Below, piece by piece: positions 46,982-48,235 of a stretch of DNA of 64,000 nucleotides (positions are counted from its first letter, which is position 1; every line of letters starts with the position of its first letter). The stretch spans positions 186,001 through 250,000 of the forward strand of contig OX337242.1 of the NCBI GenBank assembly GCA_946965045.2, written 5' to 3'. This DNA is from Epithemia pelagica. Its lineage: Eukaryota > Protista > Bacillariophyta. The notes beneath the pieces are model-generated. The model did not search any database. It was not told the origin of the DNA and saw only the letters and a program-made list of their open reading frames with translations. Made by a program: the position numbers and the translations under genes.

Positions 46982-47360
46982 GGAGGCCCGAATGAAGCCT
47001 GGGAATCGGTCGAATTGTTGTTCAGTGCCTTGCGTCAAAATCAACACTGGGAAGTTTTCGTACTTTGGTGTGGTGGACGAGCAGGACTCTCTTCGTGGAC
47101 AGACACGTTGGAAATATTTTGTTCTGAATTTCAGTTGTGAGACTCCTGGTGGAAGTGTTGGCTTCACTACTGTCTTATTGCTGACGATGGTCTGAAGGCC
47201 TTGTCAAGGGCCCTGGACTACGAGGAATCATCATCGCCGTCGTGGCAGCTCTTACGATTGTGGATGCGATCGAAGAAATTCCATGAGATTTGGTTCTTAG
47301 GTATTAATCTTGACGAAGACCATGATGACAAAGATGGAAACTATCAACCACAGCAACCCT
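46982..47360 (+). pseudogene. Eroded leucine-rich-repeat-like sequence directly upstream of the TIR gene
   Basis: One frame reads EAWESVELLFSALRQNQHWEV...DTLEIFCSEFQL*DSWWKCWLHYCLIADDGLKALSRAL. LHYCLIADDGLKALSRAL fits the RNI-like LRR pattern LxxcxIxddGxxaLaxaL. Internal TGA, and out of frame with the TIR. Confidence 0.4.
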
Positions 47361-48235
47361 GAATACGATATTATGATATCTTTGGCAGGAGAAGTTCGCA
47401 AAGAACTAGAGTGTGACTATGTCACCATGCTGAAAACTGAATTGCAAAATGCGGCAGGAGGCAAGACACTCAAGATTTTTGTGGCAGAGGAATCGTTGTA
47501 TGCTGGAGAGACTTCTAATGCGCCGGCTTCCATGTTTCGACACGCGTTAACGGCACGTCTTTTGGTATGTGTGACATCGACGCACTATGTTCAAAAACAC
47601 TGGACTATTGCAGAGTTCTTGTGTGGTCTGGCTCGCAATGAGATGGTGGGTTCGTTTGGCGTCAATGGTTTCCTTGTAGACACAATGCCGGGATGCCAGT
47701 GGGTTCTTCCCTCCCGTGACACCAACGCTGGCGAGCCGTCACTGCCAAATGCACGAGCAGCCACTCCATGTATTTCTCGAAATGCCCGTAGATGGCTGGA
47801 TGGCATCGACGCGATAGTTCCAAGTTTAGTACCTACCATGCAAATTTGTACAATCACTGGAAAGCATGAGTATCGTAAGTAATCAACAACAAGGCTGACG
47901 GCAGTAATGTTTGATAGGAATTCTTGTTGTCTTACGATTGTTGCTTCGATGGAGCAGGTTCCCGATACGCGCAGTTGGTCAATCACGTGCAGGGGGTTGC
48001 CAGTCTTGCGACTCGCTCGTTGCATCTAGCTCCAGACAGCACCGTGGGTCCCCCAAGTCGAGAGCAGCAGCAGCAGCATGGTACATCCGGTCCTTGGAAA
48101 ATGACGACGACCAAAAAAAATCGCATAGAGATGGATACGGAGATGGCGGACCACCAACACCAAACAGACTCGAACAAAGATACAACGTTGTTGCACAATC
48201 ACTTGAGAGCGTCGAAACACCTCAAAAGTCCGTAA
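47322..48235 (+). CDS. TIR-domain protein, two exons (47322-47874, 47958-48235; about 276 aa)
   Basis: YDIMISLAGEVR (TIR box 1, cf. YDVFISFRGEDVR), IFVAEESLYAGE, LLVCVTSTHYVQKHWTIAEF (cf. VVFSxNYAxSxWCLxEL). An 83-nt GTAAGT...CTTAC...CAG intron (47875-47957) joins in frame to give HEYRSRYAQLVNHVQGV. Confidence 0.8.

Follow-up and report, generated by a model that had tools for sequence, protein, structure and literature searches.

The TIR gene and its surroundings

The stretch of DNA analysed here, referred to as the window (64,000 nt of the Epithemia pelagica genome), carries on its forward strand a gene for a TIR-domain protein that starts at ATG 47322, consists of two exons with 276 codons and ends at TAA 48233-48235 (Table 1). 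Left unspliced, the ORF runs from 47310 to 47882 and is closed by TAA 47880-47882. Residues 15-26 of the predicted protein read YDIMISLAGEVR and residues 88-99 read HYVQKHWTIAEF; at the splice junction c47874 and gt47958-59 make up an Arg codon, after which the protein continues with SRYAQLVNHVQGVASLATRSLHL. A first-pass annotation of this sequence had placed TIR box 1, a glutamate at 47613-47615, an intron and a second exon here, and all four were recovered at those positions in the sequence, the ORF and its translation.

Around the TIR gene lie two ORFs that match nothing in Pfam and one gene each of the Kelch, ApaG-domain and NSUN2-like types; a ThsA-, EDS1- or SIR2-like partner gene was found nowhere among them. 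The first of the unmatched ORFs (455 aa) is intact and of equal length in the two haplotype copies of this region (the second copy, L003, is described below) despite approximately 4% divergence, and may be a real lineage-specific gene. The second (303 aa) has as its counterpart in L003 an ORF of only 121 aa. Just past the Kelch gene, an interval of some 0.5 kb showed contig depth raised 10- to 100-fold in all four public sequencing runs, the DNA-like ones included, together with many loose contig ends, and looks like a high-copy repeat. The ApaG-domain and NSUN2-like ORFs overlap at their 5' ends by approximately 70 nt and appear to be ordinary housekeeping genes.

Table 1. Features in and around the TIR gene, in window coordinates.
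Feature	Position	Strand	Remarks
455-aa ORF	45143-46510	+	Ser/Thr/Gln-rich; no Pfam match; L003 1824-3191
Putative decayed RI-like LRR region	46780-47261	+	Frame differs from that of the TIR ORF; contains stops, e.g. TGA 47138-47140
Putative deletion junction and end of ancestral linker	47262-47321	+	MRFGS*VLILTKT, compared with IMTFGIEVAKIML in paralogue
Exon 1	47322-47874	+	Approximately 13-14 linker residues, then TIR beta-A to beta-E; residues 1-184 and first base of codon 185
WTIAE (WxxxE motif)	47601-47615	+	Glu98, codon GAG 47613-47615, at predicted catalytic position
Intron	47875-47957	+	83 nt, phase 1, GTAAGT...CAG
Exon 2	47958-48235	+	Predicted alpha-E helix at approximately 47960-48025 (SRYAQLVNHVQGVASLATRSL), then 70-residue low-complexity, non-conserved tail
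303-aa ORF	48680-49591	+	Low-complexity; no Pfam match
Interval of raised contig depth	50009-50500		Looks like a high-copy repeat
Kelch-propeller gene	50691-51818	-	Convergent downstream neighbour; Pfam Kelch_1, 1.6e-34
ApaG-domain (DUF525) ORF	52344-54224	-	
NSUN2-like RNA methyltransferase ORF	54151-57903	+	1250 aa

Splicing of the gene was seen directly in a contig from run X3, in which position 47874 is joined to 47958 with exactly 83 nt skipped, GT..AG at the ends of the skipped stretch and 86 nt on the short side of the joint. Contigs from runs X1 and X4, both DNA-like (even depth, contigs of up to 0.5 Mb), retain the intron and are colinear across it. The library type of X3 is off record; its uneven depth and the spliced contig are most simply read as RNA. 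With only 8 mismatches to the window in 907 nt, where the other haplotype is approximately 8% different, the spliced contig derives from a window-type allele, and the TIR locus of the window is very probably transcribed and spliced. The canonical intron of the first-pass annotation was thus matched to the nucleotide, and its position and phase recur in two paralogous loci, L002 (7922-8024, 103 nt) and L004. Many ORF-called homologues end their TIR domain in '..GK', which is a read-through of the GGTAAG donor. On the 5' side, X3 contig sequence follows the window colinearly over 46864-47456, pointing to a long leader whose upstream ATGs, at 46992 and 47263, would hamper translation; the second of them heads a 33-codon ORF that overlaps the start of the TIR ORF. 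On the 3' side the spliced contig extends to 48864, giving the TIR gene either a 3' UTR of more than 600 nt or transcripts that overlap with the 303-aa ORF.

Searched alone, the window protein stayed below the Pfam cut-offs for both TIR (13.8 bits, cut-off 21.3) and TIR_2 (13.9 bits, cut-off 28). Other single-sequence matches were weak (PADLOC PDC-S66, 7e-6; NCBIfam retron-TIR, 0.005), the best in the PDB (phmmer) was AbTir (7uwg, E 1.6) with WTIAE placed on WTNYE, and exon 1 retrieved nothing in a word-index homology search. An exhaustive HMMER search of 1.84 billion representatives recovered 26 relatives, with a top match at E 1.6e-46 and 52% identity; several of the 26 do pass the Pfam cut-offs (P0001, TIR 29.4; P0004, TIR_2 32.2; P0010, 31.3). 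The comparison with TIR (PF01582) and TIR_2 (PF13676) that had been proposed as a check therefore came out negative for the window protein by itself and positive for its family. We aligned 24 sequences headed by the window protein, excluding the translated tandem repeat P0009 and the bacterial RTX-like repeat protein P0026. Four residues (S20, W94, E98 and C101) were invariant in this alignment, and the window protein keeps 12 of the 13 near-invariant family residues, the exception being F18M.

A profile of the family, with the window protein as its first row, matched the solved TIR domains of ROQ1 (3.3e-10), of PdTIR, RPV1, RUN1, L6 and AbTir (to 2e-7), and of RPS4, TLR1 and SARM1 (approximately 3e-3). 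The family glutamate falls on the second E of WCLEEL in ROQ1 and on the E of WPQKEL in PdTIR, and it also aligns with the glutamate of AbTir; it lies in helix alpha-C, and we take its counterparts to be E86 of ROQ1, E100 of RUN1, E208 of AbTir and E642 of SARM1. An AlphaFold2 model of exon 1 (pLDDT 73; 77-94 over core residues 15-125) has strands at residues 17-22, 52-54, 80-86 and 117-122, in keeping with the flavodoxin-like alpha/beta fold of TIR domains, in which parallel strands beta-A to beta-E go with helices alpha-A to alpha-E, and in a Foldseek search of the PDB its best 50 matches were all TIR domains, so that the fold check suggested earlier was positive. Given the family search, the relatives that pass Pfam, the invariant residues, the profile matches and the Foldseek result, we regard the predicted TIR assignment, and with it the placing of Glu98 at the catalytic position of a WxxxE(L) motif, as solid. 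The idea of a chance ORF or non-TIR sequence with coincidental motifs, for which one might cite the sub-threshold Pfam scores of the window protein alone and the empty word-index search, deserves practically no credence, refuted as it is by the phmmer family matches at E 1.6e-46, the profile matches to PDB TIRs at 3e-10, the 50 TIR domains in Foldseek and the conserved intron.

The first-pass annotation had also held that removal of the intron restores the final helix of the domain. Exon 2 of the window opens with SRYAQLVNHVQGVASLA, compared with SRYKQLVGHVKVVAKKA in the paralogues; 10 of its first 14 residues are identical to those of exon 2 in L002, and the properly spliced Epithemia proteins share a helix motif at this point (HIKVVAILAQQAL in P0006, LLQHRKVIKGLVRESL in P0007). 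This motif was recognised by eye and in the multiple alignment; BLASTP of the window exon 2 against the C-termini of P0006 and P0004 gave no alignment. The window model covers exon 1 only, and the complete TIR domain was modelled on the homologue P0006 (residues 838-1045; pLDDT 78, pTM 0.76). In that model the segment corresponding to exon 2 forms a 21-residue helix (residues 161-181, pLDDT approximately 90) after strand beta-E. Its best 50 Foldseek matches were again all TIR, with RPS4, RUN1, RPP1, L6 and AbTir aligned over 170-185 columns and a TM by target of 0.6-0.74 (RPS4, RUN1 and AbTir). Alignment and homologue model together support the proposal that exon 2 supplies the last TIR helix, alpha-E.

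Relation to LRR-linker-TIR genes

The nearest relatives of the window protein are 708-1271 aa long; in them an array of RI-like LRRs is followed by a helical linker and, at the C-terminus, by a TIR domain, and the long ones carry LRR_6 as well as TIR or TIR_2 above the Pfam cut-offs. Those with a name are hypothetical proteins of Epithemia clementina (KAL7561740.1, here P0006, and KAL7558674.1, here P0007); the closest, P0001 and P0002, belong to the same ENA assembly as the window, and locus L001 is the window itself (99.99% identity). The TIR domains of the diatom LRR-linker-TIR proteins (P0006 and P0007, and P0001, P0003 and P0004 from the same genome) are 39-52% identical to that of the window. 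Common to both are the invariant S, W, E and C residues, the phase-1 intron before alpha-E, the Kelch neighbourhood and the LRRs, the last as a remnant in the window. The window gene differs from this family in having lost the LRR array and linker as coding sequence, in starting at an internal Met, in its longer non-conserved C-terminal tail and in evolving approximately twice as fast.

Where the relatives have an in-frame N-terminal array of RI-like LRRs (LRR_6), the window locus has only an out-of-frame remnant containing stops, and some 13-14 residues are left of the linker of approximately 100 aa that joins LRR and TIR. The best-kept repeat, at 47177-47261 (IADDGLKALSRALDYEESSSPSWQLLRL), is out of frame with the TIR ORF and shows 68% amino acid identity to residues 198-223 of P0001 (E 2e-6) and 74% nucleotide identity to 6592-6670 of L002 (E 1e-10). 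Weaker tblastn matches obtained with the LRR parts of P0001, P0003, P0004, P0006 and P0007 are stacked on 46889-47290; Pfam gave no LRR match on two pieces of the remnant, which is recognisable against the paralogues only. On the side of the linker, a tblastn alignment with residues 444-642 of P0001 starts at window position 47283 and continues through an in-frame TAG at 47298-47300, situated where the paralogues carry Glu (MRFGS*V in the window, MTFGIEV in the paralogue). The LRR piece lies 101 nt from the TIR in the window and 727 nt in L002, leaving approximately 626 nt missing, and the Met-Met start (47322, 47325) corresponds to an internal AKMML of the paralogues. The second copy, L003, has the identical linker stretch, and the truncation is common to both haplotype copies.

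Two other ways of reading this upstream sequence were tried and rejected. The TAG at 47298-47300 could have marked the end of an intron (ttcttAG/GT); the homology to FGIEVA of the paralogues crosses it, and the X3 contig is colinear through it. The 455-aa ORF upstream could have been a missing 5' exon; it has no similarity to the N-termini of the family.

In view of the LRR remnant, the approximately 626 nt that are missing and the in-frame TAG, we read the ORF as what a deletion, a frame break and a nonsense change left behind, and consider it highly likely that a diatom cytosolic LRR-linker-TIR gene, truncated on its 5' side, gave rise to this TIR-only locus. On this reading, an internal deletion of approximately 0.6 kb took out the greater part of the LRR array together with the helical linker and broke the frame; a GAG-to-TAG change closed the old frame; and the ancestral internal Met codons at 47322 and 47325 now head the 276-codon ORF. 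The first-pass annotation had taken the gene for a stand-alone TIR protein, and this part of it did not hold, at least as a designed architecture: what is left appears to be the 3' portion of a gene that once encoded an LRR-linker-TIR protein.

The Kelch gene of the window is 79-82% identical at the nucleotide level to three Kelch genes that flank the TIR gene in L004, the locus of P0002, where the order TIR(+)...Kelch(-) is as in the window. Judged from these alignments, the TIR and Kelch genes of the window and the P0002 locus belong to one and the same duplicated TIR/Kelch block. L004 (1-9743, contig ctg1276l) holds a TIR-only copy with a 340-aa ORF amid its three Kelch genes, and three copies of it, more than 90% identical, occur on three contigs; this TIR is a second TIR-only copy in the same genome, truncated independently. 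The tandem repeat P0009 (1080 aa) is built from a unit of 109 aa (327 nt) that resembles TIR residues 45-103 (GGVQLRIFLAEKF...SSLRYAL), and is possibly a satellite made from a fragment of a TIR gene.

Divergence between the two copies of the locus

The second copy, L003, lies on another contig of the same assembly and is syntenic with the window at 91-95% identity. Over the whole of 43318-50158 the two are 90-95% identical with many indels, and L003 has approximately 1.1 kb of extra sequence (5670-6789; window 48770-49034 is matched twice); this divergence points either to heterozygosity of a very high degree or to homeology of the two regions. The TIR gene of L003 carries a GGA to TGA change at 47457 that turns codon 46 into a stop. 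It has lost the 36 nt from 47591 to 47626 (QKHWTIAEFLCG), and with them the catalytic Glu and the WxxxE motif, and it also has a frameshifting insertion of 38 nt after 47686 and a 6-nt deletion. The deletions are real, since they are present in public-run contigs at approximately half depth; such contigs also skip a 35-nt stretch at the insertion site (47650>47686). The TIR copy or allele of L003 is a dead gene, a pseudogene.

Between window and L003 the CDS differs at 24 positions, with approximately 13 non-synonymous codons to 2-4 synonymous changes. When these differences were polarised by the paralogues, most of the derived changes fell to L003 (F33, C53 and D113), the window allele holding the ancestral Y33, F53 and G113; derived changes of its own are N115 and LV for the family QL at residues 169-170. 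Across its 828 nt the window allele is free of disabling lesions, its splice sites are canonical and nearly all conserved family residues are in place. From the divergence of the flanks (4.8% substitutions, 0.5% indel events and 4.1% of substitutions making stops) we estimated the chance that the window ORF would be intact under neutrality since the copies split at approximately 0.1-0.25, a figure that is suggestive at most. A maximum-likelihood tree placed the window TIR inside the same-genome clade (support 98/90) on a terminal branch of 0.67, compared with 0.09-0.34 in its sister paralogues, equivalent to evolution 1.5-2.3 times faster since their shared node.

Possible functions and place among TIR systems

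The best profile and structure matches of the family are plant TIRs (ROQ1, RUN1/RPV1, RPS4, L6 and RPP1; PF01582), which resemble the window protein in three elements: the SF(A/R)GE box, a catalytic Glu carried by the WxxxE helix, and a long alpha-E. Truncated TIR-only genes derived from receptors occur in plants as well. Unlike plant TNLs, the diatom family is without NB-ARC throughout, its parental order of LRR then TIR is the reverse, and identity amounts to 12-23%. We know of no EDS1-type pathway shown in diatoms. The bacterial TIR NADases (AbTir, PdTIR, BtpA/TcpB and Thoeris ThsB) share the fold and the WxxxE motif, whereas the window gene is eukaryotic, has a spliceosomal intron, lies in no operon, has no ThsA-like partner nearby and gives weak single-sequence matches (E 7e-6 to 1.6); compared with Thoeris (ThsB plus ThsA), it has no SIR2/SLOG or other signal-activated effector gene adjacent to it. 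SARM1 has the TIR fold and a catalytic Glu in the equivalent helix and, among the NADases that were matched, stands furthest away (profile E approximately 3e-3); its ARM and SAM domains are absent from the window protein. Plant TNL, AbTir and SARM1 TIRs cleave NAD+ with their catalytic Glu, and by analogy NADase activity of the window TIR is plausible. A translated product would be a soluble TIR module devoid of LRR sensor and linker, which, once self-associated, would bind NAD+ in the pocket between BB loop and WxxxE helix and cleave it via Glu98. In the full-length paralogues, sensor and linker presumably serve control and assembly; a product lacking them would escape regulation and might be poor at associating.

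We think that the window gene is probably dispensable and in decay, one member of a receptor family that evolves by birth and death. This reading is ranked above that of a maintained effector because the other copy is dead, the change between copies looks neutral, most differences being non-synonymous, and the lineage, on its long terminal branch, evolves approximately twice as fast. On these grounds, and with an intact ORF not improbable under neutrality, the earlier description of the gene as 'maintained' finds no support. The intact 828 nt, the splice sites, the conserved residues and the ancestral Y33, F53 and G113 would nevertheless fit a maintained gene too, and both plants and bacteria have TIR-only genes that work.

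Rather less likely, in our judgement, is a maintained stand-alone TIR NADase acting as an immune or cell-death effector, whose self-association and Glu98 would bring about NAD+ depletion or a cADPR-type signal. It would account for an ORF that is intact and spliced and that keeps WxxxE and the other invariant residues, and it agrees with the fold and profile matches to the catalytically active RUN1, ROQ1 and AbTir. The gene moreover sits in a Kelch/LRR-TIR block with the birth-and-death pattern of immune receptors, and presence/absence polymorphism is common among immune genes. Against it, the second copy is null and has lost the catalytic motif too, a signal of purifying selection between the copies is lacking, intactness is compatible with neutrality (P approximately 0.1-0.25) and the branch is accelerated. 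An origin by loss of sensor and linker is not that of a designed architecture, the leader probably contains upstream ORFs, and a ThsA- or EDS1-like partner is missing close by. We also consider it unlikely that the truncated TIR-only gene persists as a functional part, polymorphic for presence and absence, of a diatom LRR-TIR/Kelch innate-immune cluster, be it as a sensor-less NADase or as a modulator of its paralogues; if true, it would be the diatom counterpart of plant TIR-only (TX-type) genes.

Least probable among the functional readings, and by our estimate very improbable, is a non-enzymatic regulator that would hetero-associate with full-length LRR-TIR paralogues and damp or prime them as a decoy or dominant-negative. 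Truncated TIR proteins of plants and animals do act in this way, and alpha-E is an interface element in plant TIRs; at this locus the helix is conserved, the protein is 47-52% identical to co-resident full-length paralogues and it has no sensor of its own. The same signs of relaxed constraint weigh against such a role, as does retention of the catalytic motif, which a pure adaptor does not need.

Animals, plants and bacteria are all known to use TIR-based immunity. For microalgae the record so far consists of expression data in one haptophyte only: in Gephyrocapsa huxleyi, TIR genes with the conserved Glu were tied to virus resistance by their expression, and TIR-based antiviral systems were stated to be previously undescribed in microalgae (PMC12489294). 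In a 2010 survey, the LRR receptors of diatoms were found to have no functional or effector domains joined to them (PMC2939053), and our literature search on the diatom LRR-TIR family found no paper. The family is under-described; the window locus, a truncated member, is nothing out of the ordinary within it. By itself this locus adds little; as a compact, naturally sensor-less TIR domain beside a natural null allele, it could be used to test NAD+ cleavage by a diatom TIR. Its wider meaning is that it shows the diatom LRR-TIR family behaving like the NLR/TNL families of plants, with block duplication alongside Kelch genes, truncation to TIR-only forms and alleles that are intact or dead according to haplotype.
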